This document shows positions 1-64,000 of a stretch of 64,000 nt of DNA, in pieces. This DNA is from Eukaryota sp. TZLM1-RC (lineage: Eukaryota > Protista > Metamonada: BaSk clade). Both the position numbers and the translations under genes were made by a program. Location: assembly GCA_040285825.1 (NCBI GenBank), contig JAUPSS010000003.1, positions 2,046,001 to 2,110,000 on the forward strand, written 5' to 3'. The notes below the pieces were generated by a model, which was given only the letters and a program-made list of their open reading frames with translations, did not search any database and was not told the origin of the DNA. Every line of letters begins with the position of its first letter. Position 1 is the first letter of the stretch.

Positions 1-3000
1 CCCACTCTCCCCACAATACAAGCTATGCTCGAAATTCATTTCAAAAAAATTTTCATTCAAAAACTGATCATTGTACCAGAAAAAACACAGAAAAACCACC
101 ATTACGTTCCTTGCGTTCTGTTGCGCGTTCTATTAACAACTCCGTTTCTCGAAATTTGTTTTCTCCAGCTGAAACTGCAAAAAGTCAAAAGTCTATTTCT
201 ACTTTTAACTCAAAAATTGACAAAATTGAAAGAACTGAAAAAATGAAACCACTGCCATTAAAAAGGTTCTAAAAATGTTCGATTTGTGGTATCAGTGGTC
301 ATAATTCGAGAACGTGCCCTGAGAAACAAAAAAGAGAATTTGAATTAAAATCTGCTCAACAAATTCTCAAATGTTCTGTTCCAGCTGTTGCCGTTGTGAA
401 AGGTGTTGAAAATAATGTTTCTGACGATCAACAGTTAAATGCTTCTAGTGTTCCCTCTTCTTCCCCTTCTGAAAACAGTAATTTTTGTTGTCCATTTTGC
501 AAAAAAAGATGTTGCAGATTCACGAAATGGTCGAAAACTTCTGTTTTGTACGAATTGTAAAGCCGTTGATACCGTAAGACCCCCGATCCGGATCCCAGTA
601 GAAATAAGTCCCGCCAGCACAATCCCCTTCTCAATGGAAATGAGAAATTTTACTTCTGAATTGAAAAATAATAAGTGGAATATTTCATCCTTCTGGAAAT
701 ATTTTGCTAGAAAAAACAAAAATTGTTTTAAGAAAAATTTGGAAATAGAAAAATTGTAAAATCAAAAATTTGCCGAAAATTGTGCTTACGTGGTCGTTAT
801 GGTGCCGCAAAGCAGTCTTTGTTTTCCTCTTCTTTGGCTGATGTAAACTCTGATACTCTTGAAAAACTCCAAAAGTTGCATCCTCAAGAAAATTTCAAGT
901 GCAGCAAGCCTGAAGTGTGTCCTTTTGGATTGAAAATCCTATTACTGCAATTGAGGTTCTTAAAGCTATTCAAAAATTACCTAAGGGGAAAGCAGCAGGC
1001 CCATCTGGAATTTCTTTTGATCTCTTAAAAATAGCGTGTTCCAGTGCTCCCGAAATTGCTGATGATCTAGCCCACTATTTTCAACAATTAATTGTTTTGA
1101 AAATAAATCCTCCATTTGAATTGCTCGCAGCACGTCTGATTGCTTTAGTAAAGCCTGGAAACGGAATCAAACCTGATGGAATACGCCCAATTGCTGTTGG
1201 TGAATCTCTTTCTCGTTTGCAGGCATCAATTGTCTTCGATCGTGTCAAAGACAAAGCCTCTACATTTTTGAATCCTCATCAATTTGGAATCAAAACAATT
1301 GATGGTGCTTCTGTTGCTGCTATTCCCTCTGATACCTTTTTTAATGCAGAGGAAAATAATTTTATTTTTAATCTCGACTTTAAAAATGCTTTTAATTCTG
1401 TAAAGCGAGAAGCAATTTTTGAAGTTATTAAATCTGATTTTCCTGAGCTATCGAGTTTTTTCTACCATTTTTATGGTAAAGAATCAGATTTGATTTTTAA
1501 TTCATTTGCTCTTAAATCATCTTCTGGTGTGAAGCAAGGTGACCCTTTAGGTCCATTATTGTTTTGTTTGGCTATTCACAAAACTTTAAATATCATTAAG
1601 CAAAAATACCCTTCTATAAAAATAGTTGCTTATATGGATGATATATCCTTGATTGGTTCATTTGATTTACTAGAATTGGTTGCTCAAGAAATTGCCGATT
1701 CATATGAAAATATTGGGCTTCATCTTAATGCCAGCAAATGCCTTCTGATTGGCTCTTCTGCTCAAGACCTCGTGATAAACGATTCTATTGTCCCTTTTAC
1801 TAATTATAGTAGTGATGCTTTTTAAGTTCCTTGGTTGTTGGTTAGAAATGTGCCTCAAATTCAGAATGAATTGCAAGTTATTTTGGAAAAAATGAAAATT
1901 GAACTTGATTCAATTTCTTCTTTAGATATAGAAAAGCATATTAAATTTTTTATGCTTAAAATTTGCTACACTGGGAGAATAACCCACATTTTGAGATCTT
2001 GTGCTCCTTCCATAGCATTAGATTTTTGTCGTTCTTTTTAATTCATTGAGAACAGAATTTTTGCTGATTTATTGGATGTAGAACCAGGAATGTTGAAAAG
2101 CCATTTATTTTCTTCAGCAAATTTGGGGGTATTGGATTTACTAAATCTTCAATTTTGTGTCAATCAGCATTCTTGGGTGGTGGCAAAAATTTTATTTATG
2201 AATTTTCTCGTAGATTTCCTGATGATTCTCATCTGTTAGTCCCCAATTGTAGTCCCTATTTGTATGAGTTATCTTGTGAACTTGAAAAATTACCGCCACA
2301 AATTTGGACCAAATGTTTTCCTCAATCAATTCAAGAAATTCCAAACCGATCTCTATTTAATTTACAGTTTTGCTGTAAAAAGCTTCAACAAAATTGTCAA
2401 AGATTTTTGAAAGCTTGGATTTTGATGTTAGACTTGGCTTGGCCAAGAAAAAGAATCCCGCTTTTGCAAATCTTTTACAAGATATGTGTGACAGTACTTC
2501 TTCTGCCTTAGTAACAACAATTCCACAAGTTTATGGTACTCTCTTATCCGATTCTGCTTGGACTCTGAATATGAGATTTCGTTCCTTTATCTGGCCTGAT
2601 AATTTACCTCATAATTTAATTTGTAAATGTTCTCGAGAAATTACAACTACTCATTTGTTAAATTGTAAACATTTTATTACTTTTAGAAGCAAGGTTCATG
2701 ATGCTGTAAGAGACCAGTTATATTGTATGTGTAAATCTCATAGAATTGAATCCTTCTTGGAACCTTTGTTGTCAAATCTGTTTGATGCTGAAAATGATTT
2801 TCATAAGAATAATAGAGGTGTTGTCATATTACCTGGATTAGATGGAAGCTTCATTTTATTGGATGTAATGTCTGTTGATCCTTGTAATGTCTCAAATGAA
2901 AGGCTTGTTAATTCTGAAATTCATAATCCCCTTTCAAATGCTGAAAATTTTAAATTCAAAAAATACAATGAACCTTTGTCCAAATTGGCCAGTCTACAGC

Positions 3001-3307
3001 ATGCAAAATACAATTTGTATCCATTTGTATTTTCCCTTTTTGGTTCACTTGCACCAACTGCTTTACGTTTTTTGGATGATTTTGAAATGATTGTAAAGAG
3101 AAGAACTGGCAGAAATTTCAACAGATTGTTTTGGCAAAATAGAATTGTGTTTTCTATTTTTAAGGGGATGTTGAAGATGGTTTCTGATGCTTTGCTTTCT
3201 CTTGGATCTCACTATGAGAGAGTTGCATCTAGTGTTTTTGTTTTGGGAGAGATGGATTTTTTAGATGTTGATTTATAGGTTTAGAATAAAATTAAATTTA
3301 AAAAAAA
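1..3307 (+). mobile_element. Family A copy, near full length, 5' end outside window, homopolymer frameshifts
   Basis: ORF pieces 439-3278 match the 1056-aa protein; 3' AATAAA and A-tail at 3286-3307. Confidence 0.9.
3286..3291 (+). promoter_or_regulatory. AATAAA polyadenylation signal in the very short family A 3' UTR (representative; present in all six families)
   Basis: tag gtttag AATAAA attaaattt followed by an A-run. Confidence 0.7.
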
Positions 3308-5188
3308 GAACTCGAAACCTTTTTTTATAGGTTTTATGGTAATTCATCTGATTTAATTTTTAATTCTTTTAATCTGGATTCTTTATCAGGAGTTAAACAA
3401 GGAGACCCTTTAGGTCCTTTCTTTTTTTGTTTTGCAATTCACCCAATTTTGAAAAAATTAAAAGAAGAAAATTCTGACCTTCAAGTGGTAGCTTACATGG
3501 ATGACATTTCTTGTATTGGTCCAGAGAGTACAATTAATAGGGTTGCTAATGAAGCTGCTACATTATACCAATCCATAGGTCTTGATTTGAATGTTCAAAA
3601 ATGTTTTTGTATTTCTAGGAAAAATGTTAAGTTAATAATTAATTCCCTCGAAGTTCCATATATTGATTATACTTCAACTAGTTTCTGCTTTCTGGGTTGC
3701 TATTTAGGTTCCGCCGAAAAGACACTTGACAGCCTTGAAAATTATTTAAATTCAATTAAAAAAGAGCTAGAAGTCATAAAGACTCTTGAATTGGAAAAAC
3801 ATCTTAAGTTTTTTCTTTTGAAAATTTGTTATGCTGGAAAAATTACTCATTTACTGCGATCATTACCTCCATCCCTAACTTACAATTTTTGTAGACAATT
3901 TAACAAAATACGTACCCAATTTTTGGCTTATTTAATGTCTGTTGATCCATCAATTTTGAAAAATCATATTTTTTCTGATGTTCAACTTGGCGGTGTTGGA
4001 TTCAATTCATCAAAATATTTGACCAAAGCTGCATTTATTGGTGGTGGAAAAAATTTTGTATTTGAATTCTCTAGAAGATATCCTTTGCCGAAAATCTTCT
4101 TGAAAATACAAATAGCATATTCCTGGATAACTTAAGAGAAGAAATATCCAGTTTATCTCCCGACTTATGGCAATCATGTTTCCCCATATCCATTCAAGAA
4201 ATTCCAGACAGAAGTTTATATTCATTAAAATTTGCGTTGAAAAGCTCCAACGACATCTTTTGAAAAATTTTGAAAACAAGGATTTTATTGTTCGACTTAG
4301 CACGGCTAAGAAAGAAAATCCTGCTTTTGCCAATTTTTTGATTGATTTGAAGGACAGTTCATCGGCAGTTTTGATAAATCAAATTCCCCAGATTTATGGT
4401 CTATTTTTGAATGACGACCAATGGACCACTGCTATGAGAATGCGTTGTTATTTATGGCCTTGTAATTTGCCCAATGATTTGTTTTGTAAATGTGGAGCTG
4501 GTTTGACATTATCACATTTATTTAATTGTAATAGATATATTTCCTATCGTTCTACGTTGCATGATGCAGTCAGAGATCAAATCCATGCAATGTGTAATTC
4601 CTATCATATTGAATCTTTTGTAGAACCTTTGTTGAGGTCTCTTGATATAAATGAAAGCGTAAGAGATTCAGAATATGGACAACGACGTGCTGATGTTGTT
4701 GTGCCCTCGTTTGATGATGTCATGAATGTTGTTGATGTCGTAACAGTGGATGTTTGCAAGAAAAATGCCTTGAAAAATGCTCAATCCGAAGTATCCCCCC
4801 TTGATGACTCCGAATTGTACAAACGGAAAAAGTATGCAAATCCTTTAAAAGAATTGAAACATGTTCGCCATGTAGATTACCAAATTTGCCCATTTGCTAT
4901 ATCGTTGCATGGTCGTCTTGGAAAAACTGCTTTGAATTTTATTGATGATTTTGAAAATCTTGTGAAAAAAAGAATGAATAAGCGTTTTGATCGTCGCTTG
5001 TGGCTAAATCGTATTGTTTTTACTATTTTCAAATCAATTCCTAAAATGATTTCGAAAGCTTTAATGTCTGTCAGTGCACATTATGAAAACATTGCTGCTG
5101 TAAGGTTTGATGGTGTGGAAGCTTGTTTTGAAGATATTGACTTTTAGACTGTGGTTTTGAAAATAAATTAAAAGTATGTTAAAAAAAA
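3308..5188 (+). mobile_element. Family B copy, 5'-truncated (RT C-terminal half + RLE)
   Basis: GVKQGDPLGP and AYMDD; ORFs 3449-4135 and 4167-5147 ending CFEDIDF; AATAAA and A-tail. Confidence 0.88.
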
Positions 5189-6262: not shown

Positions 6263-6727
6263 AGAAGATAGTGAATCAGAAATTAGTTTTACCATTCCCT
6301 TAAAAATAGAAAATACAATCCTGTTTTGCCAGTAAACACGATTGAAAATTCTTCCAGTTCTTTCCTTTTCAACTACAACAAAATCCTCAAGGAAAGCCAT
6401 AGCAGCCTTACCTAGAGATCCAAGCAAAGAAAAAACAAATGGACATAAATGTTCGTTTTGATCATATTCCTTTAAATGAATCACATCCGTTATTAATTTC
6501 TCTTGAAAAAATGGTGCAAGAACTACCTGTTGATATTTGGAATAGGAGTTTTCCTTCAAGTTTGCCTGCTGTGCCTTCGAGATCTTTCACCAACCTTCAT
6601 CTTGCTGTTGTGAAATTACAGAAGTCTGTTCTTATTGGTTTTGAAGACCTGGACTTTTCTAAACGACTTAGTGTGACTAAGATTAATAATCCCGTCTTTG
6701 CTGCCTTTTTATCAGACATTCAGAACT

Positions 6728-9700
6728 TTTTTTTTTAAAATTTAATTTTATTCTAAACCTATAAATCAACATCTAAAAAATCCATCTCTCCCAAAACAAA
6801 AACACTAGATGCAACTCTCTCATAGTGAGATCCAAGAGAAAGCAAAGCATCAGAAACCATCTTCAACATCCCCTTAAAAATAGAAAACACAATTCTATTT
6901 TGCCAAAACAATCTGTTGAAATTTCTGCCAGTTCTTCTCTTTACAATCATTTCAAAATCATCCAAAAAACGTAAAGCAGTTGGTGCAAGTGAACCAAAAA
7001 GGGAAAATACAAATGGATACAAATTGTATTTTGCATGCTGTAGACTGGCCAATTTGGACAACGGTTCATTGTATTTTTTGAATTTAAAATTTTCAGCATT
7101 TGAAAGGGGATTATGAATTTCAGAATTAACAAGCCTTTCATTTGAGGCATTACAAGGATCAACAGACATTACATCCAATAAAATGTAGCTTCCATCTAAT
7201 CCAGGTAATATGACATCACCTCTATTATTCTTATGAAAATCATTTTCAGCATCAAACAGATTTGACAACAAAGGTTCCAAGAAGGATTCAATTCTATGAG
7301 ATTTACACATACAATATAACTGGTCTCTTACAGCATCATGAACCTTGCTTCTAAAAGTAATAAAATGTTTACAATTTAACAAATGAGTAGTTGTAATTTC
7401 TCGAGAACATTTACAAATTAAATTATGAGGTAAATTATCAGGCCAGATAAAGGAACGAAATCTCATATTCAGAGTCCAAGCAGAATCGGATAAGAGAGTA
7501 CCATAAACTTGTGGAATTGTTGTTACTAAGGCAGAAGAAGTACTGTCACACATATCTTGTAAAAGATTTGCAAAAGCGGGATTCTTTTTCTTGGCCAAGC
7601 CAAGTCTAACATCAAAATCCAAGCTTTCAAAAATCTTTGACAATTTTTGTTGAAGCTTTTTACAGCAAAACTGTAAATTAAATAGAGATCGGTTTGGAAT
7701 TTCTTGAATTGATTGAGGAAAACATTTGGTCCAAATTTGTGGCGGTAATTTTTCAAGTTCACAAGATAACTCATACAAATAGGGACTACAATTGGGGACT
7801 AACAGATGAGAATCATCAGGAAATCTACGAGAAAATTCATAAATAAAATTTTTGCCACCACCCAAGAATGCTGATTGACACAAAATTGAAGATTTAGTAA
7901 AACCAATACCACCCAAATTTGCTGAAGAAAATAAATGGCTTTTCAACATTCCTGGTTCTACATCCAATAAATCAGCAAAAAATTCTGTTCTCAATGAATT
8001 AAAAGAACGACAAAAATCTAATGCTATGGAAGGAGCACAAGATCTCAAAATGTGGGTTATTCTCCCAGTGTAGCAAATTTTAAGCATGAAAAATTTAATA
8101 TGCTTTTCTATATCTAAAGAAGAAATTGAATCAAGTTCAATTTTCATTTTTTCCAAAATTACTTGCAATTCATTCTGAATTTGAGGCACATTTCCTAACC
8201 AACAACCAAGGAACTTAAAAGCATCACTACTATAATTAGTAAAAGGGACAATAGAATCGTTTATCACGAGGTCTTGAGCAGAAGAGCCAATCAGAAGGCA
8301 TTTGCTGGCATTAAGATGAAGCCCAATATTTTCATATGAATCGGCAATTTCTTGAGCAACCAATTCTAGTAAATCAAATGAACCAATCAAGGATATATCA
8401 TCCATATAAGCAACTATTTTTATAGAAGGGTATTTTTGCTTAATGATATTTAAAGTTTTGTGAATAGCTAAACAAAACAATAATGGGCCTAAAGGATCTC
8501 CCTGCTTCACTCCAGAAGATGATTTAAGACCAAATGAATTAAAAATTAAATCTGATTCTTTCCCATAAAAATGGTAGAAAAAACTCGATAGCTCAGGAAA
8601 ATCAGATTTAATAACTTCAAAAATTACTTCTCGCTTTACTGAATTAAAAGCATTTTTAAAGTCGAGATTAAAAATAAAATTATTTTCCTCTGCATTAAAA
8701 AAGGTATCAGAGGCAATAGCAGCAACAGAAGCACCATCAATTGTTTTGATTCCAAATTGATGAGGATTCAAAAATGTAGAAGCTTTGTCTTTGACACGAT
8801 CGAAGACAATTGATGCTAGCAAACGAGAAAGAGATTCACCAACAGCAATTGGGCGTATTCCATCAGGTTTGATTCCGTTTCCAGGCTTTACTAAAGCAAT
8901 CAGGCGTGCTGCGAGTAATTCAAATGGAGGATTAATTTTCAAAACAATCAATTGTTGAAAATAGTGGGCTAGATCATCAGCAATTTCGGGAGCACTGGAA
9001 CACGCTATTTTTAACAGATCAAAAGAAATTCCAGATGGGCCTGCTGCTTTCCCCTTTGGCAATTTTTGAATAGCTTTAAGAACTTCAATTGCAGTAATAG
9101 GATTTTCAATCCAAAAAGGACACACTTCAGGCTTGCTGCACTTGAAATTTTCTTGAGGATGCAACTTTTGAAGTTTTTCAAGGGTATCAGAGTTTGCATC
9201 AGCCAAAGAAGAGGAAAACAAAGACTGCTTTGCGGCACCATAACGACCACGTAAGCACAATTTACGGCAAATTTTTGATTTTGCAATTTTTCTATTTCCA
9301 AATTTTTTCTTAAAACAATTTTTGTTTTTTCTAGCAAAATATTTCCAGAAGGATGAAATATTCCACTTATTATTTTTCAATTCAGAAGTAAAATTTCTCA
9401 TTTCCATTGAGAAGGGGATTGTGTTGGCGGGACTTATTTCTACAGGGATCCGGATCGGGGGTCTTACGGTATCAACGGCTTTACAATTCGTACAAAACAG
9501 AAGTTTTCGACCATTTCGTGAATCTGCAACATCTTTTTTGCAAAATGGACAACAAAAATTACTGTTTTCAGAAGGGGAAGAAGAGGGAACACTAGAAGCA
9601 TTTAACTGTTGATCGTCAGAAACATTATTTTCAGCACCTTTCACAACGGCAACAGCTGGAACAGAACATTTGAGAATTTGTTGAGCAGATTTTAATTCAA

Positions 9701-10005
9701 ATTCTCTTTTTTGTTTCTCAGGGCACGTTCTCGAATTATGACCACTGATACCACAAATCGAACATTTTTTTGAACCTTTTAATGGCAGTGGTTTCATTTT
9801 TTCAGTTCTTTCAATTTTGTCAATTTTTGAGTTGAAAGTAGAAATAGACTTTTGACTTTTTGCAGTTTCAGCTGGAGAAAACAAATTTCGAGAAACGGAG
9901 TTGTTAATAGAACGCGCAACAGAACGCAAGGAACGTAATGGTGGTTTTTCTGTGTTTTTTCTGGTACAATGATCAGTTTTTGAATGAAAATTTTTTTGAG
10001 ATGAA
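6728..10005 (-). mobile_element. Family A copy with uninterrupted ORF, inserted in D
   Basis: TSD acattcagaact (6716-6727 / 10012-10023); T-run tail at 6728; 5' filler aactgt copies the adjacent target. Confidence 0.92.
6759..9929 (-). CDS. Family A polyprotein (CCHC knuckle, C4 Zn motif, reverse transcriptase, Zn motif, restriction-like endonuclease); frame uninterrupted but 5'-truncated
   Basis: 1056-aa ORF with CSICGISGHNSRTC, CPFC..CTNC, IRPIAVGE, LDFKNAFNS, GVKQGDPLGP, AYMDD, CKC..HLLNC..H, RGD..D..K..KY. The listed start is a TTG. The true ATG (MPLADSDS, seen at 14291 in another copy) lies 66 codons upstream and is absent here; full protein is ~1122 aa. Confidence 0.93.
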   Translation of the reverse strand: MRSVARSINNSVSRNLFSPAETAKSQKSISTFNSKIDKIERTEKMKPLPLKGSKKCSICGISGHNSRTCPEKQKREFELKSAQQILKCSVPAVAVVKGAENNVSDDQQLNASSVPSSSPSENSNFCCPFCKKDVADSRNGRKLLFCTNCKAVDTVRPPIRIPVEISPANTIPFSMEMRNFTSELKNNKWNISSFWKYFARKNKNCFKKKFGNRKIAKSKICRKLCLRGRYGAAKQSLFSSSLADANSDTLEKLQKLHPQENFKCSKPEVCPFWIENPITAIEVLKAIQKLPKGKAAGPSGISFDLLKIACSSAPEIADDLAHYFQQLIVLKINPPFELLAARLIALVKPGNGIKPDGIRPIAVGESLSRLLASIVFDRVKDKASTFLNPHQFGIKTIDGASVAAIASDTFFNAEENNFIFNLDFKNAFNSVKREVIFEVIKSDFPELSSFFYHFYGKESDLIFNSFGLKSSSGVKQGDPLGPLLFCLAIHKTLNIIKQKYPSIKIVAYMDDISLIGSFDLLELVAQEIADSYENIGLHLNASKCLLIGSSAQDLVINDSIVPFTNYSSDAFKFLGCWLGNVPQIQNELQVILEKMKIELDSISSLDIEKHIKFFMLKICYTGRITHILRSCAPSIALDFCRSFNSLRTEFFADLLDVEPGMLKSHLFSSANLGGIGFTKSSILCQSAFLGGGKNFIYEFSRRFPDDSHLLVPNCSPYLYELSCELEKLPPQIWTKCFPQSIQEIPNRSLFNLQFCCKKLQQKLSKIFESLDFDVRLGLAKKKNPAFANLLQDMCDSTSSALVTTIPQVYGTLLSDSAWTLNMRFRSFIWPDNLPHNLICKCSREITTTHLLNCKHFITFRSKVHDAVRDQLYCMCKSHRIESFLEPLLSNLFDAENDFHKNNRGDVILPGLDGSYILLDVMSVDPCNASNERLVNSEIHNPLSNAENFKFKKYNEPLSKLASLQHAKYNLYPFVFSLFGSLAPTALRFLDDFEMIVKRRTGRNFNRLFWQNRIVFSIFKGMLKMVSDALLSLGSHYERVASSVFVLGEMDFLDVDL

Positions 10006-11356
10006 AACTGTACATTCAGAACTGTACTAGTTTAATATCTCAGCAACCAAGGCCATTTGGTCTTCACTTAACAAATGAAGCTTGGAAACAAAACATGCGG
10101 TTGAGATTAGGGATGTATCCAAGTGGTCTTTTGGATAATTCTTATTGTATTTGTAACAAAAAACCTACTGCCAATTTTCGTCATATTGTGAGCTGTAAGA
10201 AATTTCTCCAATATAGGTCAGTTCTTCATAATGCCGTTCGTGATGTGACATATGAGATGTTCAAGTGTTACAATTTTAGTTGCAAAGTAGAACCTTTGTT
10301 GAAGCATTATAGTGATGATAATCTTTTTAATTCACGTCGAGGTGATTTAATTGCTCCTTTTGTGGATTCCTCTCAAGTTGTTGTTGATTTCACTACAGTT
10401 GATCCCTTTGCTTTTGTTTATCGCGATGATGTTTTACTTAGTACTAATGGTCATTTAAACAAGGCTGAAGATCGTAAGAGAGATAAATATACTGAGATAT
10501 TAAATGATTTAAATAAGAACCTTTATTCGAAGTTTTCGTTTGTTCCTTTTGCCTTTTCGATTTTTGGCAACATTGGACAATCCGCCTTGAATTTCATCAA
10601 TGATTTTGGTAATTTATGTCGTTCAAGTGGTAAGAATTTTGCAGAGAATTTATGGAAAAATCGTATCATTTTCGCTTTGTACAGAAGTGTTCCCAAGTAC
10701 TTGAGTTTAATGATGTCTAAACTTTATAAGGATTCATCAAGAGTTGGCGTGGAGAATTTAGTTTCTTATGTGTTTTAGTTTGTTTTGTTTTTATTTGATT
10801 CTTTAAATAAATAAAATTATTTTAATGGACATAAATTATATTGGGCATGAGAATTTTCATTAACCGAGGAAATGGGTTTCGCATATTTAGCAATTTTATA
10901 TTTTTCGCCTGCAAGAAGAGGATTATTTACATCCGAGTTAATGAGATGTTCGTTAGAGGAATTACAAGGGTCAATAGACATGGCGTCCAAAATAGTAAAA
11001 CTACCATTTAAACCAGGAACATCTAGATCACCTCTAGTCAGACCCACAGAAGCTCTGTTGTAACGCGTACTATCAATATTGGGATTATCAAGAATTAATT
11101 TTGATAACAGCGGTTCTAAAAAGGAATCTACTCTATATGATTTGCACATTACATAAATTGGGTCCCTGACGTTATTATGCACTTTGCTTCTAAACGTAAT
11201 GAAATGTTTGCAGTTCAAAAGATGAGTAAACAAAAGAGGTTTACCACATTTACAAGTTAAATGATTGGGAAAATTGTTTGGCCACAGAAAACAACGAAAA
11301 CGCATGCTTAGAAGCCATTCATTGTTTTTTAACAAAAGTCCATAAACATTGGGAAC

Positions 11357-13760: not shown

Positions 13761-16700
13761 ATTTTGAATTTTTCCAAAGGTTCCCTTTTGATGTTCATCT
13801 GATCAATGGTGAATCAAATTTTTATTTGAATCAACTTCAAATCGAATTAGATAATTTGCCTAGTGATATCTGGATTCAGTGTTTTCCTCAAAATGTTCAA
13901 GAAATTCCCACCCGATCACTTCCAAATTTACGTTTTTGCTTGGAAAAGCTTCAGCACCATCTGGTTAAATTATATGAAGGCTTGGATTATGAAGTAAGAC
14001 TTGGCTTGGCCAAAACTAAAAATCCCGCTTTCGGTAATTTTTTAAAGGATATTCGTGATAGTTCAGCTGCTGCTTTAGTAACTCAAGTTCCCTCTGTTTA
14101 TGGACTTTTGTTAAAAAACAATGAATGGCTTCTAAACATGCATTTTCGTTGTTTTCTGTGGCCAAACAATTTGCCCAATCATTTAACTTGTAAATGTGGT
14201 AATGTTTTTTTTTCTCCCTCCCTTAGTCAACCCTTTCATTTTTCACTTTCTGTCAAGGCGTCAAAGTCGTACTGTTTTTCTGTCAAAACGATGCCTTTGG
14301 CTGATAGTGACTCTGATACTGATTGGAACGCCCAAGCAAAGATTCTACCAGTCAGATCAAGCTCATCCACTCCACTTCCCCACTCTCCCCACAATACAAG
14401 CTATGCTCGAAATTCATCTCAAAAAAATTTTCATTCAAAAACTGATCATTGTACCAGAAAAAACACAGAAAAACCACCATTACGTTCCTTGCGTTCTGTT
14501 GCGCGTTCTATTAACAACCCCGTTTCTCGAAATTTGTTTTCTCCAGCTGAAACTGCAAAAAGTCAAAAGTCTATTTCTACTTTTAACTCAAAAATTGATA
14601 AAATTGAAAGAACTGAAAATATGAAACCACTGCCATTAAAAAGGTTCTAAAAAGTGTTCGATTTGTGGTATCAGTGGTCATAATTCGAGAACGTGCCCTG
14701 AGAAGCAAAAAAGAGAATTTGAATTAAAATCTGCTCAACAAATTCTCAAATGTTCTGTTCCAGCTGTTGCCGTTGTGAAAGGTGCTGAAAATGATGTTTC
14801 TGACGATCAACAGTTAAATGCTTCTAGTGTTTCCTCTTCTTCCTCTTCTGAAAACAGTAATTTTTGTTGTCCATTTTGCAAAAAGATGTTGCAGATTCAC
14901 GAAATGGTCGAAAACTTCTGTTTTGTACGCATTGTGAAGCCGTTGATACCGTAAGACCCCCGATCCGGATCCCAGTAGAAATAAGTCCCGCCAGCACAAT
15001 CCCCTTCTCAATGGAAATGAGAAATTTTACTTCTGAATTGAAGAATAATAAGTGGAATATTTCATCCTTCTGGAAATATTTTGCTAGAAAAAACAAAAAT
15101 TGTTTTAAGAAAAATTTGGAAATAGAAAAATTGTAAAATCAAAAATTTGCCGAAAATTGTGCTTACGTGGTCGTTATGGTGCCGCAAAGCAGTCTTTGTT
15201 TTCCTCTTCTTTGGCTGATGTAAACTCTGATACCCTTGAAAAACTCCAAAAGTTGCATCCTCAAGAAAATTTCAAGTGCAGCAAGCCTGAAGTGTGTCCT
15301 TTTTGGATTGAAAATCCTATTACTGCAATTGAGGTTCTTAAAGCTATTCAAAAATTACCTAAGGGGAAAGCAGCAGGCCCATCTGGAATTTCTTTTGATC
15401 TCTTAAAAATAGCGTGTTCCAGTGCTCCCGAAATTGCTGATGATCTAGCCCACTATTTTCAACAATTAATTGTTTTGAAAATAAATCCTCCATTTGAATT
15501 GCTCGCAGCACGTCTGATTGCTTTAGTAAAGCCTGGAAACGAAATCAAACCTGATGGAATACGCCCAATTGCTGTTGGTGAATCTCTTTCTCGTTTGCTG
15601 GCATCAATTGTCTTCGATCGTGTCAAAGACAAAGCTTCTACTTTTTTAAATCCTCATCAATTTGGAATCAAAACAATTGATGGTGCTTCTGTTGCTGCTA
15701 TTGCCTCTGATACCTTTTTTTAATGCAGAGGAAAATAATTTTATTTTTAATCTCGACTTTAAAAATGCTTTTAATTCTGTAAAGCGAGAAGCAATTTTTG
15801 AAGTTATTAAATCTGATTTTCCTGAGCTATCGAGTTTTTTTCTACCATTTTTATGGTAAAGAATCAGATTTAATTTTTAATTCATTTGCTCTTAAATCAT
15901 CTTCTGGTGTGAAGCAAGGTGACCCTTTAGGCCCATTATTGTTTTGTTTAGCTATTCACAAAACTTTAAATATCATTAAGCAAAAATACCCTTCTATAAA
16001 AATAGTTGCTTATATGGATGATATATCCTTGATTGGTTCATTTGATTTACTAGAATTGGTTGCTCAAGAAATTGCCGATTCATATGAAAATATTGGGCTT
16101 CATCTTAATGCCAGCAAATGCCTTCTGATTGGCTCTTCTGCTCAAGACCTCGTGATAAACGATTCTATTGTCCCTTTTACTAATTATAGTAGTGATGCTT
16201 TTAAGTTCCTTGGTTGTTGGTTAGGAAATGTGCCTCAAATTCAGAATGAATTGCAAGTTATTTTGGAAAAAATGAAAATTGAACTTGATTCAATTTCTTC
16301 TTTAGATATAGAAAAGCATATTAAATTTTTTATGCTTAAAATTTGCTACACTGGGAGAATAACCCACATTTTGAGATCTTGTGCTCCTTCCATAGCATTA
16401 GATTTTTGTCGTTCTTTTAATTCATTGAGAACAGAATTTTTTGCTGATTTATTGGATGTAGAACCAGGAATGTTGAAAAGCCATTTATTTTCTTCAGCAA
16501 ATTTGGGGGTATTGGATTTACTAAATCTTCAATTTTGTGTCAATCAGCATTCTTGGGTGGTGGCAAAATTTTATTTATGAATTTTCTCGTAGATTTCCTG
16601 ATGATTCCCATCTGTTAGTCCCCAATTGTAGTCCCTATTTGTATAAGTTATCTTGTGAACTTGAAAAATTACCGCCACAAATTTGGACCAAATGCTTTCC

Positions 16701-18429
16701 TCAATCAATTCAAGAAATTCCAAACCGATCTCTATTTAATTTACAGTTTTGCTGTAAAAAGCTTCAACAAAAATTGTCAAAGATTTTTGAAAGCTTGGAT
16801 TTTGATGTTAGACTTGGCTTGGCCAAGAAAAAGAATCCCGCTTTTGCAAATCTTTTTACAAGATATGTGTGACAGTACTTCTTCTGCCTTAGTAACAACA
16901 ATTCCGCAAGTATATGGTACTCTCTTATCCGATTCTGCTTGGACTCTGAATATGAGATTTCGTTCCTTTATCTGGCCTGATAATTTACCTCATAATTTAA
17001 TTTGTAAATGTTCTCGAGAAATTACAACTACTCATTTGTTAAATTGTAAACATTTTATTACTTTTTAGAAGCAAGGTTCATGATGCTGTAAGAGACCAGT
17101 TATATTGTATGTGTAAATCTCATAGAATTGAATCCTTCTTGGAACCTCTGTTGTCAAATCTGTTTGATGCTGAAAATGATTTTCATAAGAATAATAGAGG
17201 TGATGTCATATTACCTGGATTAGATGGAAGCTTTATTTTATTGGATGTAATGTCTGTTGATCCTTGTAATGCCTCAAATGAAAGGCTTGTTAATTCTGAA
17301 ATTCATAATCCCCTTTCAAATGCTGAAAATTTTAAATTCAAAAATACAATGAACCTTTGTCCAAATTGGCCAGTCTACAGCATGCAAAAATACAATTTGT
17401 ATCCATTTGTATTTTCCCTTTTTGGTTCACTTGCACCAACTGCTTTACGTTTTTGGATGATTTTGAAATGATTGTAAAGAGAAGAACTGGCAGAAATTTC
17501 AACAGATTGTTTTGGCAAAATAGAATTGTGTTTTCTATTTTTAAGGGGATGTTGATGATGGTTTCTGATGCTTTGCTTTCTCTTGGATCTCACTATGAGA
17601 GAGTTGCATCTAGTGTTTTTGTTTTGGGAGAGATGGATTTTTTAGATGTTGATTTATAGGTTTAGAATAAAATTAATTTTTTTTTAAAAAAAAATGTGGT
17701 AAACCTCTTTTGTTTACTCATCTTTTGAACTGTAAACATTTCATTACGTTTAGAAGCAAAGTGCATAATAACGTCAGGGACCAAATTTATGTAATGTGCA
17801 AATCATATAGAGTAGATTCCTTTTTAGAACCGCTGTTATCAAAATTAATTCTTGATGATCCCAATATTGATAGTACGCGTTACAACAGAGCTTCTATGGG
17901 TCTGACTAGAGGTGATCTAGTTGTTCCTGGTTTAAATGGTAGTTTTACTATTTTGGACGCCATGTCTATTGACCCTTGTAATTCCTCTAACGAACATTTC
18001 ATTAACTCGGATGTAAATAATCCTCTTCTTGCAGGCGAAAAATATAAAATTGCTAAATATGCGAAACCCATTTCCTCGGTTAATGAAAATTCTCATGCCC
18101 AATATAATTTATGTCCATTTGTTTTTTCTTTGCTTGGATCTCTAGGTAAGGCTGCTTTGGCTTTCCTTGAGGATTTTGTTGTAGTTGTAAAGGAAAGAAC
18201 TGGAAGAATTTTCAATCGCGTTTACTGGCAAAACAGGATTGTATTTTCTATTTTTAAGGGAATGGTAACACTAATTTCTGATTCACTATCTTCTTTTGGG
18301 AAATTTTCTGAATCTTTAGCAATTAATTGTTTTGATGTAGGGGAGGCAGGTTTTGAGGATGTGGAGTTTTAATTGTGTATTTCATATTTGTTGTTGAATA
18401 AAAATAAAAAGAAATTTAAACAAAAAAAA
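13761..18429 (+). mobile_element. Family C 5'-truncated copy split by full-length A
   Basis: C sequence 13761-14202 continues at 17692-18372 (GFEDVEF). Confidence 0.87.
14203..17691 (+). mobile_element. Family A full-length copy (~3.49 kb); ATG at 14291, stop at 17659
   Basis: TSD aaatgtggtaa (14192-14202 / 17692-17702); starts with T-run + ctccctccc; frameshifts in homopolymers. Confidence 0.92.
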
Positions 18430-21197: not shown

Positions 21198-21906
21198 AGA
21201 AGATAGTGAATCAGAAATTAGTTTTACCATTCCCTTAAAAATAGAAAATACAATCCTGTTTTGCCAGTAAACACGATTGAAAATTCTTCCAGTTCTTTCC
21301 TTTACAACTACAACAAAATCCTCAAGGAAAGCCATAGCAGCCTTACCTAGAGATCCAAGCAAAGAAAAAACAAATGGACATAAATTATATTGGGCATGAG
21401 AATTTTCATTAACCGAGGAAATGGGTTTCGCATATTTAGCAATTTTATATTTTTCGCCTGCAAGAATAGGATTATTTACATCCGAGTTAATGAGATGTTC
21501 GTTAGAGGAATTACAAGGGTCAATAGACATGGCGTCCAAAATAGTAAAACTACCATTTAAACCAGGAACAACTAGATCACCTCTAGTCAGACCCATAGAA
21601 GCTCTGTTGTAACGCGTACTATCAATATTGGGATTATCAAGAATTAATTTTGATAACAGCGGTTCTAAAAAGGAATCTACTCTATATGATTTGCACATTA
21701 CATAAATTTGGTCCCTGACGTTATTATGCACTTTGCTTCTAAACGTAATGAAATGTTTGCAGTTCAAAAGATGAGTAAACAAAAGAGGTTTACCACATTT
21801 ACAAGTTAAATGATTGGGCAAATTGTTTGGCCACAGAAAACAACGAAAACGCATGTTTAGAAGCCATTCATTGTTTTTTAACAAAAGTCCATAAACATTG
21901 GGAACT
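21198..21906 (-). mobile_element. Family C internal fragment (uninterrupted equivalent of 6263-11356 and 45094-47468)
   Basis: ORF 21159-21884; both junctions identical to the other two copies. Confidence 0.87.
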
Positions 21907-45066: not shown

Positions 45067-45093
45067 ATAAAATTTAAATTTTGGTAAAAAAAA

Positions 45094-49039: not shown

Positions 49040-52037
49040 AATTTTTTTATAATAAATATATATTTTTTTAAAAAAATTAATTTTAATCTAAACCTATAAA
49101 TCAACATCTAAAAAATCCATCTCTCCCAAAACAAAAACACTAGATGCAACTCTCTCATAGTGAGATCCAAGAGAAAGCAAAGCATCAGAAACCATCTTCA
49201 ACATCCCCTTAAAATTTTTTTTTTTAAAAACTGGAATATTTATTGAGATAAAAATAACCATCTAGAATTCAATATCCTCCAAACAAGCGTCACTATTACT
49301 GAACCTACTCACAGCATTACGTTCATATTCTACACCAATAGCTAAAAGTGCCTTTGAAATCATTGTTGGAATAGACTTGAAAATGCAAAAAACAATTCTA
49401 TTTAACCAGAAAGTGGAGTTCATTGTTTTACCAGACCTATTCAGTAACACTTTTTTAAAATTTTCCAAAAAGTGCAAGCCTGAAGGTCCAATATTGCCAA
49501 AAAGAGAAATTGCAAACGGCACAAACTGATATTTCACATGTTCCACTCTACCTAACTGTGCCAAAGGTTCTTCATATTTTTTTATCTTCTTTTTTTCGGC
49601 GTTAGATAACGGCGAGTCAGCGGAATACACTAAACGAGCAGCAGAATTTTTGCAAACATCCACTGAGACAACGTCTACAACATTGAGAACACCATCGATC
49701 CCTGGAGCTACTAAATCTGCCCTTCTTTTACCAAAGGAATCATCAGTTTGATCTGAAGACAGCTTACGTACTAGTGGCTCAATAAATGCCTCTATATTGA
49801 AACTTTTGCACATGGCATATAATTGATCACGAACTGAGTCATGAACAAGTGAGCGATAAGTTATGAAATACTTACAGTTTAAAATATGGGAAAGCGTAAC
49901 AACACTCTTGCAGCGACAAATTAAATCATTTGGCAATGAGCAAGGCCATAGAAAACATCTCAATCTCATTGCAGTGGTCCATTGGTGATCATTAAGTAGA
50001 AGGCCGTAAATGTTGGGAATTTGGGAGATTAAGCAACTTGAGCAACTGTCTTCAAGATCAATCAAAAAGTTTGCAAAAACGGGATTTTTTTCCTTAGCCA
50101 AGCTAAGACGTACAATATAATCCAAGTTTTCTAAAACTTTCAAAATTTTTTCTGCAATTTTGCAAAAGTCAATGGTAAGGAGAGCAAGCTTCTTGAAGGA
50201 AGTTCCACAATATCAGAGGGGAAACATTTAGCCCAAATATTGGGTGAAAGAGTTTCAATTTCCTGTTGCAAAGAAATAAGATAGGAGCTGCCACAATTTT
50301 CAATGAGATGAATTTTTTCAGGAAAACGATTCACAAATTCATAAATAAAATTCTTTCCACCTCCAATAAAGGCAGCTTTACAAAGGTAGCTTGACTTATG
50401 AAAATCAACACCACCAAAATTTGTACCACAAAAATGTGGCTTCGTAACTGAGATGCATCAATTTCCAATAATTTTGCTAAAAAATTAGTTCTTTGTTCAT
50501 TAAAAATGCGACAGAACTCCAAGGAAATTGATGGTGATGTTGATCTCAAAATATGAGTAAATTTTCCAGAATAACAGATTTTGAGGAAAAAGAATTTCAA
50601 ATGTTTCTCAATATTTAAATTTTCTATTGATTCTAATTCATTTCCAAATTGAGTCAACAGAGTCGAAAGTTGGCTTTTCACTTCATCAATATTTCCGAGA
50701 TAACAACCCAAAAAACGAAAACCAGACTGATCATAATTGATAAAGGGGACATTTACATCATTAATGAAAAAATCAATTGGTTCATGGCCTTAAAAATAGA
50801 ATACACAATTCTATTTTGCCAAAACAATCTGTTGAAATTTCTGCCAGTTCTTCTCTTTACAATCATTTCAAAATCATCCAAAAAACGTAAAGCAGTTGGT
50901 GCAAGTGAACCAAAAAGGGAAAATACAAATGGATACAAATTGTATTTTGCATGCTGTAGACTGGCCAATTTGGACAAAGGTTCATTGTATTTTTTGAATT
51001 TAAAATTTTCAGCATTTGAAAGGGGATTATGAATTTCAGAATTAACAAGCCTTTCATTTGAGGCATTACAAGGATCAACAGACATTACATCCAATAAAAT
51101 AAAGCTTCCATCTAATCCAGGTAATATGACATCACCTCTATTATTCTTATGAAAATCATTTTCAGCATCAAACAGATTTGACAACAGAGGTTCCAAGAAG
51201 GATTCAATTCTATGAGATTTACACATACAATATAACTGGTCTCTTACAGCATTATGAACCTTGCTTCTAAAAAGTAATAAAATGTTTACAATTTAACAAA
51301 TGAGTAGTTGTAATTTCTCGAGAACATTTACAAATTAAATTATGAGGTAAATTATCAGGCCAGATAAAGGAACGAAATCTCATATTCAGAGTCCAAGCAG
51401 AATCGGATAAGAGAGTACCATATACTTGCGGAATTGTTGTTACTAAGGCAGAAGAAGTACTGTCACACATATCTTGTAAAAGATTTGCAAAAGCGGGATT
51501 CTTTTTCTTGGCCAAGCCAAGTCTAACATCAAAATCCAAGCTTTCAAAAATCTTTGACAATTTTTGTTGAAGCTTTTTACAGCAAAACTGTAAATTAAAT
51601 AGAGATCGGTTTGGAATTTCTTGAATTGATTGAGGAAAGCATTTGGTCCAAATTTGTGGCGGTAAATTTTCAAGTTCACAAGATAACTCATACAAATAGG
51701 GACTACAATTGGGGACTAACAGATGGGAATCATCAGGAAATCTACGAGAAAATTCATAAATAAAATTTTTGCCACCACCCAAGAATGCTGATTGACACAA
51801 AATTGAAGATTTAGTAAATCCAATACCCCCCAAATTTGCTGAAGAAAATAAATGGCTTTTCAACATTCCTGGTTCTACATCCAATAAATCAGCAAAAAAT
51901 TCTGTTCTCAATGAATTAAAAGAAGGACAAAAATCTAATGCTATGGAAGGAGCACAAGATCTCAAAATGTGGGTTATTCTCCCAGTGTAGCAAATTTTAA
52001 GCATAAAAAATTTAATATGCTTTTCTATATCTAAAGA
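49040..52037 (-). mobile_element. Family A 5'-truncated copy split by F
   Basis: 3' end 49060-49214; resumes at 50788. Confidence 0.85.
49215..50787 (-). mobile_element. Family F 5'-truncated copy (only large F copy in window)
   Basis: ORFs 50331-50711, 50140-50334, 49262-50143 ending CLEDIEF; RRAD RLE motif; TSD ccttaaaa. Confidence 0.87.
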
Positions 52038-57520: not shown

Positions 57521-60020
57521 TTTTTTTTTAATTTATTTTTATTCAACAACAAATATGAAATACAATTAATTTATTGAATTTGCACACTTGATTAAATTAA
57601 ATCATAACTAATGGGACGACTATCATTAAACCAAGATTTCCTCTACAAAATCTTGATTTGCTTGCTGTCTAGCTAAAGCTTCTCTAATTCGATTGAAAAA
57701 CCGCGGTAATCTATTAATAATGGCAAATTGAATCCGTGAACGCCATAAAAAAATATCAAATCTTTTCATTGATTTTTCTTTCACCATTTTTTGGAAGTCA
57801 TCCAAAAAAGTTTCTGCTTCAACTGATAATCTTCCATTTATCGAAAATGGAAAAGCAATAAAAACCAGCTGTGTATTTCTATCGATATTTGCATCTTCAA
57901 TTTCTTTATCATATTTTCTATGTTTTTCTTTTGCTTTAAAATCCAGAGCAGCCACAGGATTAAGTTTTCTTCTGTGAACCAAAGTATTGTTTGCAACATT
58001 ACATGAGACAAAGTCAACAATAGCTTCAGAATTATCAATCCAATCACAGTATACATCACCTCTATCATCAGAACCAAAATTATTCAGAGAAAGTGTTTCT
58101 TTCAGCAGGGGCTCTTTGATACACGATATCCTTGCAGTTTGTGCCATATTGAAAACAGTGTCTCTAACAGCATCATGTAATGAAGAACGATAAGTTATCA
58201 ATTTAGAGCAATTTAGAGCATGGCGCAAAGTGAGTTGAGGTGAATTCGAACAAATACATTTTTCTTTTGATAATAATTGGTTAATGGGGATGTTCAAATA
58301 TAATCTCATTTTTGTTACAAATGCTTCATTAGTAGCACACAATCCAAATCTTCGTGGTACAATGGTTACAAAAAGTGAAGAATCTGACACCTTGTTTTCA
58401 CAAACACCCTTTTCCAATAACAATGAGTGAAGATCTTATATATGAAATACACAATTAAAACTCCACATCCTCAAAACCTGCCTCCCCTACATCAAAACAA
58501 TTAATTGCTAAAGATTCAGAAAATTTCCCAAAAGAAGATAGTGAATCAGAAATTAGTGTTACCATTCCCTTAAAAATAGAAAATACAATCCTGTTTTGCC
58601 AGTAAACACGATTGAAAATTCTTCCAGTTCTTTCCTTTACAACTACAACAAAATCCTCAAGGAAAGCCATAGCAGCCTTACCTAGAGATCCAAGCAAAGA
58701 AAAAACAAATGGACATAAATTATATTGGGCATGAGAATTTTCATTAACCGAGGAAATGGGTTTCGCATATTTAGCAATTTTATATTTTTCGCCTGCAAGA
58801 AGAGGATTATTTACATCCGAGTTAATGAAATGTTCGTTAGAGGAATTACAAGGGTCAATAGACATGGCGTCCAAAATAGTAAAACTACCATTTAAACCAG
58901 GAACAACTAGATCACCTCTAGTCAGACCCATAGAAGCTCTGTTGTAACGCGTACTATCAATATTGGGATCATCAAGAATTAATTTTGATAAAAGCGGTTC
59001 TAAAAAGGAATCTACTCGATATGATTTGCACATTACATAAATTTGGTCCCTGACGTTATTATGCACTTTGCTTCTAAACGTAATGAAATGTTTACAGTTC
59101 AAAAGATGAGTAAACAAAAGAGGTTTACCACATTTACAAGTTAAATGATTGGGCAAATTGTTTGGCCACAGAAAACAACGAAAACGCATGTTGAGAAGCC
59201 ATTCATTGTTTTTTAACAAAAGTCCATAAACAGAGGGAACTTGAGTTACTAAAGCAGCAGCTGAACTATCACGAATATCCTTTAAAAAATTACCAAAAGC
59301 GGGATTTTTAGTTTTGGCCAAGCCAAGTCTTACTTCATAATCCAAGCCTTCATATAATTTAACCAGATGGTGCTGAAGCTTTTTCAAGCAAAAACGTAAA
59401 TTTGGAAGTGATCGGGTGGGAATTTCTTGAACATTTTGAGGAAAACACTGAATCCAGATATCACTAGGCAAATTTTCTAATTCAAATTGCAGTTGATTCA
59501 AGTAAAAATTTGATTCACCATTGATCAGATGAACATCAAAAGGGAACCTTTGGAAAAATTCAAAAACAAAATTTTTACCACCTCCCAAAAATGCTGCTTT
59601 ACACAGAATCGAAGATTTGGTGAATCCAATGCCACCCAAATCTGCTGAACAAAATACATGACTTCGAATTAAAGATTCATTTACTTCTAATAAAGAAGAA
59701 AAAAATTTAACTCGAAGTTTGTTAAAAGATCTGCAAAAATTGAGAGATACCGATGGGGGTGTTGACCTTAAAGTATGAGTGAATTTTCCGGAATAACAAA
59801 TTTTTAAAATAAAAAAATTTGATGTGTTTCTCAATGTCACATTCAGCAATAAAACTAAGATCCTTGTCAAACTTCTCCAATAAATTGTTTAACTGGGAAT
59901 AAATTTCATCCAAATTGCCAAGCCAACATCCAAGAAACTTAAAAGCTTGTTGGTTATAATTGATAAAAAGGAATCTGAGCTCCACCAATTATCAAAGATT
60001 GTTTTTCTCTACCAATCAAG
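57521..60020 (-). mobile_element. Family C 5'-truncated copy with E (57565-58439, minus) in its 3' UTR
   Basis: ORFs 58455-59870 (C) and 57626-58423 (E); TSD atatgaaataca (57553-57564 / 58440-58451). Confidence 0.87.
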
Positions 60021-62526: not shown

Positions 62527-62592
62527 ACCTCTATTGATTGAGGAAAACATTTGTATTTTTTGAATTAAAAATTTTCAGCATTTGAAAGGGGA

Positions 62593-64000
62593 TCTTTAGC
62601 AATTAATTGTTTTGATGTAGGGGAGGCAGGTTTTGAGGATGTGGAGTTTTAATTGTGTATTTCATATTTGTTGTTGAATAAAAATAAAAAGAAATTTAAA
62701 CAAAAAAATCCAGGTAATATAACATCACCTCTATTATTCTTATGAAAATCATCTTCAGCATCAAACAGATTTGACAACAGAGGTTCCAAGAAGGATTCAA
62801 TTCTATGAGATTTACACATACAATATAACTGGTCTCTTACAGCATCATGAACCTTGCTTCTAAAAGTAATAAAATGTTTACAATTTAACAAATGAGTAGT
62901 TGTAATTTTTCGAGAACATTTACAAATTAAATTATGAGGTAAATTATCAGGCCAGATAAAGGAACGAAATCTCATATTCAGAGTCCAAGCAGAATCGGAT
63001 AAGAGAGTACCATAAACTTGTGGAATTGTTGTTACTAAGGCAGAAGAAGTACTGTCACACATATCTTGTAAAAGATTTGCAAAAGCAGGATTCTTTTTCT
63101 TGGCCAAGCCAAGTCTAACATCAAAATCCAAGCTTTCAAAAATCTTTGACAATTTTTGTTGAATCTGCAAATCTTTCGTGAATCTGCAACATCTTTTTTG
63201 CAAAATGGACAACAAAAATTACTGTTTTCAGAAGGGGAAGAAGAGGGAACACTAGAAGCATTTAACTGTTGATCGTCAGAAACATTATTTTCAGCACCTT
63301 TCACAACGGCAACAGCTGGAACAGAACATTTGAGAATTTGTTGAGCAGATTTTAATTCAAATTCACCTCTATTTTTTTTTACAAAATTTTAATTTTATTC
63401 AAAACCTATAAATCAACATCTAAAAAATCCATCTCTCCCAAAACAAAAACACTAGATGCAACTCTCTCATAGTGAGATCCAAGAGAAAGCAAAGCATCAG
63501 AAACCATCTTCAACATCCCCTTAAAAATAGAAAACACAATTCTATTTTGCCAAAACAATCTGTTGAAATTTCTCCCAGTTCTTCTCTTTTAGATCAATTC
63601 AAAATCATCCAAAAAACGTAAAGCAGTTGGTGCAAGTGAACCAAAAAAGGAAAATACAAATGGATACAAATTGTATTTTGCATGTTGTAGACTGGCCAAT
63701 TTGGACAAAGGTTCATTGTATTTTTTGAATTTAAAATTTTCAGCATTTGAAAGGGGATTATGAATTTCAGAATTAACAAGCCTTTCATTTGAGGCATTAC
63801 AAGGATCAACAGACATTACATCCAATAAAATGAAGCTTCCATCTAATCCAGGTAATATGACATCACCTCTATTATTCTTATGAAAATCATTTTCAGCATC
63901 AAACAGATTTGACAACAGAGGTTCCAAGAAGGATTCAATTCTATGAGATTTACACATACAATATAACTGGTCTCTTACAGCATCATGAACCTTGCTTCTA
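62593..64000. mobile_element. Mosaic: C 3' end (+, 62593-62708), A fragments (-, 62709-63372), A 3' copy (-, 63372-64000)
   Basis: Junctions match those at ~18410-18440 (direct) and ~13550-13760 (inverted). Confidence 0.8.

Follow-up and report, generated by a model that had tools for sequence, protein, structure and literature searches.

Introduction

R2 and the other non-LTR retrotransposons with a restriction-like endonuclease (RLE), such as R4, NeSL, CRE, Hero and Genie, encode a single ORF with N-terminal zinc-binding motifs, a reverse transcriptase (RT) and a C-terminal CCHC motif combined with a PD-(D/E)xK-type endonuclease, and their copies carry poly(A) tails, 5′ truncations and target-site duplications (TSDs). 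R2 is site-specific and has N-terminal C2H2 and Myb domains, and a fixed target such as spliced-leader (SL) RNA genes is a trait of the CRE clade. The EhLINEs of the anaerobic protist Entamoeba, which has an AT-rich genome, are also of the RLE type and insert without targeting (PMC1635306); they are flanked by TSDs and lie dispersed near genes. Within metamonads, the Giardia elements GilM and GilT (Genie) form unidirectional head-to-tail arrays at telomeres (PMC10088271, PMC10999387).

A different group of described systems consists of gene-free islands of young, mutually nested retroelements located at centromeres. Clusters of ZeppL/L1 in green algae and of G2/Jockey-3 in Drosophila are retrotransposon-built centromeres of this kind, one per chromosome and occupied by CenH3. 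RLE-type LINEs are, to our knowledge, a class of retroelements not known to form centromeres. The DIRS-1 clusters of Dictyostelium likewise constitute retrotransposon-built centromeres, with one island per chromosome and demonstrated CenH3 occupancy (PMC2995078).

The genome of the metamonad Skoliomonas litria is 55.4% repetitive (PMC11316075). The genome paper gives the figure of 55% repeats without describing the elements, and the word 'retro' is absent from its text (PMC11316075). Here, we analyse a stretch of 64,000 bp from this genome (contig JAUPSS010000003.1, positions 2,046,001-2,110,000; hereafter the window, whose own coordinates are used below unless the contig is named), located at 55-57% of the 3,724,615-bp contig. 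A preliminary description, made from the letters of the window, had proposed that it is a candidate retrotransposon-built centromere, a subtelomere or a transposable element (TE) sink.

Results

The annotated Skoliomonas gene models run across nested fragments and are chimeric, and we therefore defined the element families from DNA. For the library we took six references from the window, namely A (3490 bp), B (1591 bp), C (1881 bp), D (3352 bp), F (1083 bp) and G (1573 bp), all of them natural copies or, for D and F, natural pieces joined at a TSD, with no consensus used. When annotated with this library, 63,451 of the 64,000 bp (99.1%) are covered by these six non-LTR retrotransposon families, in 83 fragments. 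Self-BLAST indicated that 95% of the bases have a second copy inside the window at 90% identity or more, and the single-copy rest still matches element protein by tblastn. Family A accounts for 38.2 kb in 49 fragments, 24 on the plus and 25 on the minus strand, followed by B (8.3 kb), D (7.4 kb), C (6.1 kb), F (2.0 kb) and G (1.6 kb); the families lie in both orientations. Fragments are 96-100% identical in DNA to their own family reference, and in some stretches of 800-1100 bp copies match each other at 100%; the amino-acid identity between the six families is 35-58%, in agreement with the preliminary description of six diverged families with nearly identical copies within each. No host gene was found in the 64-kb window, where a tRNA search returned none, an Rfam search matched no family, including no rDNA or SL gene, and telomere-type (TTAGGG-type) repeats were sought and not found; a 368-aa ORF at 38800-39906 gave no gene call on look-up. 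The initial impression of 64 kb devoid of host genes and unique spacers is thus borne out.

A stack parse of the window resolved 22 nested insertions, up to five levels deep. In 18 of them the TSD is exact, with a length of 7-14 bp and a median of 11 bp, and the description of the families as mutually inserting is borne out. Copies of A are found in F, B, C, D and A, F is inserted into B, and C, B, D and G are inserted into A. The five-level nest (21906..35006, plus strand) runs from outer to inner through A(+), A(-), D(-), A(-) and A(+), with a TSD bounding every level. Within these limits, a near full-length D copy (23735..34082, minus strand; D positions 2-3352), from which most of the D reference derives, is interrupted by two A insertions and is 30-34% identical to the A protein over residues 53-1017. 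A full-length A copy (27996..33420, minus strand) is inserted in D with the TSD ATAGCATACTTT and is itself split by an A(+) insertion at 28731-30652 (TSD AGATAAAGGAA). Another D copy (42293..44007, plus strand), which provided the D 5′ terminus of the reference (42293-43482), lies inside an A copy and is flanked by the 11-bp TSD AAAATTTTCAG; it has kept both termini around an internal deletion that joins D 1-1190 to 2816-3343, and it is without RT.

The A reference is a full-length copy of 3490 bp (14205..17694, plus strand) inserted in B with the TSD AAATGTGGTAA, whose 5′ end reads T9 then CTCCCTCC and whose ORF is broken by frameshifts. An intact ORF is present in the A copy at 6727..10005 (minus strand), from an ATG at 9797 to a stop at 6759-6761, encoding 1012 aa. 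Relative to the full element, this copy lacks 208 bp at its 5′ end; it has a poly(A) end and the TSD GTTCTGAATGT, and sits inside an F copy (6451..10823, plus strand, composed of 6451-6726 and 10017-10823) that was in turn inserted in B(-) with the TSD AATGGACATAAAT. The C reference (3308..5188, plus strand) continues upstream of an A insertion that occupies window positions -173 to 3307 within C (TSD GAACTCGAA). In the same part of the window, what appeared as a head-to-tail, telomere-like array at 1-6263 resolved into nested insertions when the upstream flank was read. The only G copy of the window (49215..50787, minus strand) is 5′-truncated and inserted in A(-) with the TSD CCTTAAAA; the longest B copy (58430..60020, minus strand), 5′-truncated as well, has a 477-aa open frame that covers the RT end, the CCHC motif and the RLE. 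The footprints of target-primed reverse transcription (TPRT) are thus all present, namely 3′ poly(A), 5′ truncation and target-site duplication, and among the A fragments the 3′ end is kept in ~25 but the true 5′ end in only 3.

The RT of the element matches Pfam RVT_1 at 3.9e-23, the only Pfam match of that search; PDB sequence matches are R2 and L1 ORF2p, and an Atlas feature search with the element recovered RVT_1 clusters only. The AF2 model of the intact 1012-aa A protein (pLDDT 84.6) has full-length R2Tg, R2Pm and R2Bm as best fold matches (E 1e-25 to 1e-24 over ~920-1020 columns), with L1 ORF2p ranking behind the R2 proteins and a sequence identity to R2 of 13-18% in these fold matches. 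The protein layout comprises an N-terminal zinc knuckle and zinc finger, the RT, and a C-terminal CCHC motif with the RLE, and has no N-terminal APE domain; the residues C..C..H..C, R-x-D, D and K..Y do not vary across the six families and two distant homologues. At the N-terminus, a gag-type CCHC knuckle and a C4-like motif (Pfam zf-CCHC matches on P0018) stand where R2 has its C2H2 and Myb domains. The six families, labelled CRE-like in the preliminary description, have the architecture of R2-like RLE-bearing non-LTR retrotransposons, as characterized by a LINE-type RT, a C-terminal CCHC motif with the RLE and TPRT footprints, and they share the single-ORF organization, poly(A) tails, 5′ truncation and TSDs with R2 and the other RLE elements. 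The site specificity of R2 is however missing: no motif is shared among the targets of the 18 TSDs, indicating that the elements, unlike CRE or R2, do not insert site-specifically, and the fixed target typical of the CRE clade was found neither in these TSDs nor as an Rfam RNA gene in the window. In this respect they resemble the EhLINEs, with which they have in common the RLE type, the anaerobic protist host with an AT-rich genome, the lack of a fixed target sequence and the TSDs. In contrast to the dispersed EhLINEs, several diverged families in S. litria form gene-free nests of at least 130 kb. Judging from the intact ORF and the 100%-identical stretches, the elements may be currently active.

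On the contig, the gene-free island around the window extends from 2,042,759 or less to ~2,172,400, i.e. over about 130-155 kb and at least 130 kb, and ends on the right at a GCN5-like gene. A gene-free block of this size is large for this genome, in which genes occur at a density of about one per 2 kb. The same families are found elsewhere in the genome. Contig 1 harbors pure nests of them at 1.72 Mb and around 3.49 Mb (3.44-3.52 Mb), hence in at least two places 1.7 Mb apart, with a nest edge at 3.43 Mb adjoining proteasome ATPase and MINDY genes, and smaller clusters lie beside GAPDH, kinesin, dynein and PRA1/RCC1 genes. An even dispersal of the families had been named at the outset as an argument against a centromere. 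The separate nests and smaller clusters show dispersal in part.

Discussion

The window is the interior of a gene-free transposon island of nested R2-like LINEs, and this island is probably a TE sink. Of the options raised by the preliminary description, this one fits everything that was observed, since the island lies mid-contig, its insertions have no common target sequence, the same families occur in other nests and beside ordinary genes, and TE-only stretches are expected in a genome with 55% repeats. Such an island would arise by repeated TPRT of the six diverged families. A single insertion duplicates 7-14 bp of an A/T-rich target and leaves a poly(A) end, in most cases together with a 5′ truncation; pieces that were already composite would then be recopied by duplication or re-transposition. 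Its persistence could be explained if, assuming selection, the host bears no cost when one element lands in another, while insertions in the dense genic parts are removed, so that elements would pile up in the island; a bias to A-rich sites and poly(A) tails or to silent chromatin may contribute. The selective character of this sink is inferred, and so is the convergence of RLE elements on one chromatin domain that was also proposed.

The six families, one of them with an intact ORF, represent undescribed R2-like LINEs without site specificity in a deep-branching metamonad, and they appear to be a main cause of the inflation of the S. litria genome. Their clean and dense nesting offers a natural record of RLE-type retrotransposition, from TSD lengths and 5′ truncation to chimeric copies, copies with internal deletions and the T-run 5′ terminus.

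It is conceivable, but rather doubtful, that the elements actively target their own kind, preferring resident copies via poly(A) tails and A-rich sites or via tethering to silent chromatin. The first base of the TSD is an A in 14 of the 18 cases (in the sense of the inserted element), a C insertion sits where the poly(A) of an A copy meets the TSD, A and C have a common 3′ junction at B position 886, and the A tail is joined three times to B(-) 1491 and three times to A 511; such same-nucleotide junctions could reflect a site preference instead of passive accumulation. However, the excess of A starts is marginal, with 0.78 observed against 0.56 expected from a rough estimate for the absorption of flanking A next to poly(A), and the recurrent junctions share private tail variants, for which the copying of a single event is the simpler explanation. 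On the basis of these tail variants and of the TSDs without common motif, we rejected sequence-specific targeting of sibling elements as the main explanation; copies that adjoin genes outside the nests also argue against self-targeting. We consider it unlikely that the island is, or contains, the centromere of the chromosome, which would then be a regional centromere of RLE-type LINEs. Its location at 55-58% of a gene-dense 3.72-Mb contig, the absence of genes over at least 130 kb, and a content made only of young nested retroelements in both orientations speak for such a reading, and a gene-free island of young nested retroelements is also what the DIRS-1, ZeppL/L1 and G2/Jockey-3 centromeres have. 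These known retrotransposon centromeres are, however, of DIRS or APE type with one island per chromosome, whereas the S. litria island is of RLE type, and on contig 1 at least, uniqueness appears to fail, given the two or more separate pure nests of the same families. Adjoining genes at many places and the 55% repeats of the genome, with the TE-only stretches they entail, weigh against a centromere as well. About as unlikely is the wider proposal that the ~130-155 kb island is the centromere and that a guild of RLE-type (R2-like) LINE families alone makes and renews the centromeres of Skoliomonas; if one such island per chromosome did prove to bind CenH3, RLE-type elements would for the first time be seen to build a centromere.

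Two further explanations concern the ends of the chromosome and the assembly itself, and both are very improbable. A subtelomeric or telomere-associated retrotransposon array, as formed by Giardia GilM/GilT, Cnl1 and MoTeR, was suggested by the RLE-type elements in a relative of Fornicata, clustering with their own kind as GilM/GilT do, and by some head-to-tail arrangements. The two contig ends are ~2.05 Mb and 1.6 Mb away from the window, which has no TTAGGG-type repeats, and the head-to-tail cases are nested insertions with TSDs. Moreover, GilM/GilT arrays are unidirectional and telomeric, while the island is internal, nested and bidirectional, as the nearly even strand distribution of family A illustrates. 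The subtelomere put forward in the preliminary description is therefore refuted, barring a contig misjoin of two chromosome ends at the island. That the Nanopore assembly collapsed or scrambled the repeats of this region is scarcely more credible. In its favor, the copies are 97-100% identical, and polishing errors could account for the frameshifts seen in most of them. Whole insertions are, however, bounded by exact TSDs in 18 cases, with continuity of the host sequence restored across them, which random misjoins would not produce. The published assembly has a Merqury completeness of 98.7% (PMC11316075), and the empty-site forms of two insertions are present in independent short-read contigs, which support the nest of the F copy at 6451..10823.

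Composition of the window

We annotated the window with six retrotransposon family references, all drawn from the window itself: A from 14205-17694, B from 58430-60020 (reverse complement), C from 3308-5188, D from three overlapping natural pieces that were joined, F from 6451-6726 plus 10017-10823, and G from 49215-50787 (reverse complement). These references cover 63,451 of the 64,000 bp in 83 fragments, the remainder being short tails, and family A alone makes up 60% of the window (49 fragments, 24 plus and 25 minus). By self-BLAST, 95% of the window has a second in-window copy at ≥90% identity, with most alignments at 96-99%. A 1056-codon open frame, at whose first in-frame ATG the 1012-aa ORF starts, matched the whole window by tblastn in distinct identity classes (~95-100%, 55%, 45-50% and 30-35%); between families, protein identity is 35-58%. 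GC content is flat, at 31-37% throughout, and searches of the window for tRNAs and Rfam families found none. The six families in two orientations, the near-identical copies and the lack of a host gene, all noted in the preliminary description, are thus confirmed by reference annotation, self-BLAST and tblastn, and the six-family observation is right and well supported.

Protein architecture and termini of the elements

The A ORF carries an N-terminal CX2CX4HX4C knuckle and a C4-like motif, followed by a reverse transcriptase (RT; Pfam RVT_1, 3.9e-23) and then by CKC..H..C and RGD...D...K..KY. The top Foldseek matches of its AlphaFold2 model (36 homologues; mean pLDDT 84.6, pTM 0.80) are the full-length R2 proteins 9nl3, 9dou, 9nl2 and 8gh6 (E 1e-25 to 1e-24 over ~920-1020 columns), with human L1 ORF2p ranking behind. 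A C-terminal alignment (A2) of the six families and two distant homologues shows invariant CCHC, R, H, E, R-x-D, D, K and Y. The R2 fold matches and the invariant CCHC and endonuclease residues thus identify the six families as R2-like non-LTR elements bearing a restriction-like endonuclease (RLE). The elements are new, and their kind (R2-like RLE non-LTR) is already known. The published assembly of Skoliomonas litria (Eukaryota sp. TZLM1-RC; GCA_040285825.1) comprises 16 contigs and 31.9 Mb, 55.4% of it repetitive, and the genome paper left its retrotransposons undescribed (PMC11316075).

Full-length A measures 3490 bp, from a nine-T run followed by CTCCCTCC to a T(n)A(n) tail that varies; the copy with the intact ORF is missing the first 208 bp. 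Full-length A and D copies open with 9-10 T and then a stretch of pyrimidines, which is CTCCCTCC for A and CTTCCTCT for D, as seen at 14205-14222, 33403-33420 and 42293-42310 and in the A copy starting at window position -173. This T-run mirrors the 3' A-run of the element.

Nested insertions and their footprints

We parsed the fragment map as a stack, counting an insertion if its removal restored the continuity of the host element. This recovered 22 insertions in the window; in 18 of them, perfectly matching direct repeats 7-14 bp long (median 11), the target-site duplication (TSD), lie on either side of the insert. Nearly all families serve as host as well as guest, and the deepest nest (21906-35006) has five levels, A(+) > A(-) > D(-) > A(-) > A(+) from outermost to innermost; mutual insertion of the families, as initially proposed, is borne out by these events. 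The 3' end is preserved in about 25 A fragments and the true 5' end in only three, the 5' truncation typical of target-primed reverse transcription (TPRT). The 18 targets share no common motif. The first base in the insert sense is A in 14 of the 18, an excess we estimate to be only marginal once flanking A's absorbed beside the poly(A) are allowed for. CRE elements are defined in their behaviour by a fixed target, whereas the targets here are varied; of the earlier label "CRE-like RLE", the RLE part stands, on the invariant residues and R2 folds, and the CRE-like part is not shown.

The segment 1-6263, which could be taken for a head-to-tail chain, resolves into nested events once the upstream flank is read, in which an A copy spanning -173 to 3307 lies inside C (TSD GAACTCGAA). 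A 1.7-kb D copy (42293-44007) lacks the RT and has both termini and an 11-bp TSD. At B position 886 (TSD AAATGTGGTAA), the 3' junctions of one C copy (5186) and one A copy (17692) coincide; it appears that the C copy inserted into an older A insertion, at its poly(A)/TSD boundary. In public read-set contigs from the same study, the F-in-B and A-in-F insertions are each represented by an empty-site form; such forms are expected from other B and F copies, and they confirm the 13-bp TSD. Of the 31-mers sampled from window 5900-11400, 70% also occur in a same-study run labelled as a different organism, whose contigs are ≥99% identical; this run is either the same strain under a second name or a very close strain sharing the families.

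Recurrent composites

Several junctions recur. One composite, joining an A tail to B(-) 1491 and B(-) 779 to A 2212, occurs three times (5909-6450 plus 10824-12290; 20699-22677; 45069-45655 plus 47324-48121). It begins with the 3' part of an A copy, whose tail has a private "GGT" variant, and continues through inverted B 1491-779 into A from 2212 onwards; the left ends differ among the three copies, and it was evidently copied once formed. A junction between an A tail, of a private "GT" variant, and A 511 is likewise found three times (13339-14202; 52040-53997; 62707-64000), and an A copy bearing a B(-) insert at 3272-3284 twice. Every recurrent junction has its own private tail variant, so the composites were copied after formation, through either duplication or re-transposition that truncated the 5' end anew. 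Copies are 100% identical over stretches of 800-1100 bp.

In two of the three A tail/A 511 copies, A 511-700 runs straight into B, starting at B position 456, a structure suggestive of a chimeric, RT-poor A/B derivative; the third continues into A 2559-3017, an internal deletion. A further unit, found at 35006-38580 and again at 39894-41935, is made up of inverted C 1359-1566, then C 447-1336, then A from 2523 through its 3' end. Its two copies are 100% identical over ~1.1 kb, and only the first carries a B(-) insertion, which shows that a C/A chimera with an inverted 5' part was duplicated very recently and one copy then received the insertion.

Extent of the island and dispersal of the families

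The island, the block of nested elements whose interior is the window, was delimited from loci around called genes on contig 3 (JAUPSS010000003.1; 3,724,615 bp). Gene calls on this contig include the intact ORF (6759-9797, minus strand), and matching its locus to the window placed window position 1 at record position 2,046,001, hence the window at 55-57% of the contig. Record positions 2,042,759-2,065,797, 2,111,818-2,134,404 and 2,140,940-2,164,307 are ~92-99% RLE sequence. To the right of 2,164,307 come more RLE fragments and a repeated HTH_33-type putative DNA transposon, up to a GCN5-like gene (Acetyltransf_1 plus Bromodomain) at ~2,172,400 that marks the right end. The gene-free block is therefore at least 130 kb long. 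Farther on, at 2,204-2,227 kb, RLE copies are scattered among kinesin and CCDC39-like genes.

The same families are found on at least 10 contigs. On contig 1 (4.04 Mb), nests at 1,722,227-1,745,323 and 3,492,795-3,516,690 are 98% and 98.5% RLE, a nest edge at ~3.436 Mb directly follows proteasome-ATPase and MINDY genes, a 19-kb cluster at 1.62-1.64 Mb adjoins GAPDH and WD40 genes, and, at 1.47-1.49 Mb, a 6.5-kb cluster lies amid PRA1, RCC1 and KBP genes. Diverged copies on contig 3 (3.68-3.70 Mb) adjoin dynein and prismane genes. With copies on other contigs and beside genes, the families are dispersed, in nests of many sizes.

The preliminary description had offered a centromere, a subtelomere or a TE sink. 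The position of the window along its contig, together with the absence of telomere-type repeats from the window, leads us to reject the subtelomere. Dispersal and the many nest sizes favour a sink over one specialised domain, and we consider a TE sink the best-fitting reading, and a probable one. That the island is a centromere is unlikely, though the largest island of each chromosome may be the candidate carrier of one. The sequence shows how the island grew: by non-site-specific TPRT of R2-like elements into each other, together with copying of composites.

The right part of the island (record ~2,156-2,168 kb) contains a repeated non-RLE element of ~1.2 kb (locus L006, 7048-8271; locus L011, 4797-5597 and 16452-17252) with a weak match to HTH_33, a transposase-type domain; it is probably a DNA transposon. 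A further RLE family adjoins the dynein and prismane genes at 3.69 Mb on contig 3 (locus L004, 9460-12522 and 14841-18402). It lies outside the six-family library, with ~60-63% identity to the A protein, so that the RLE guild exceeds six families.
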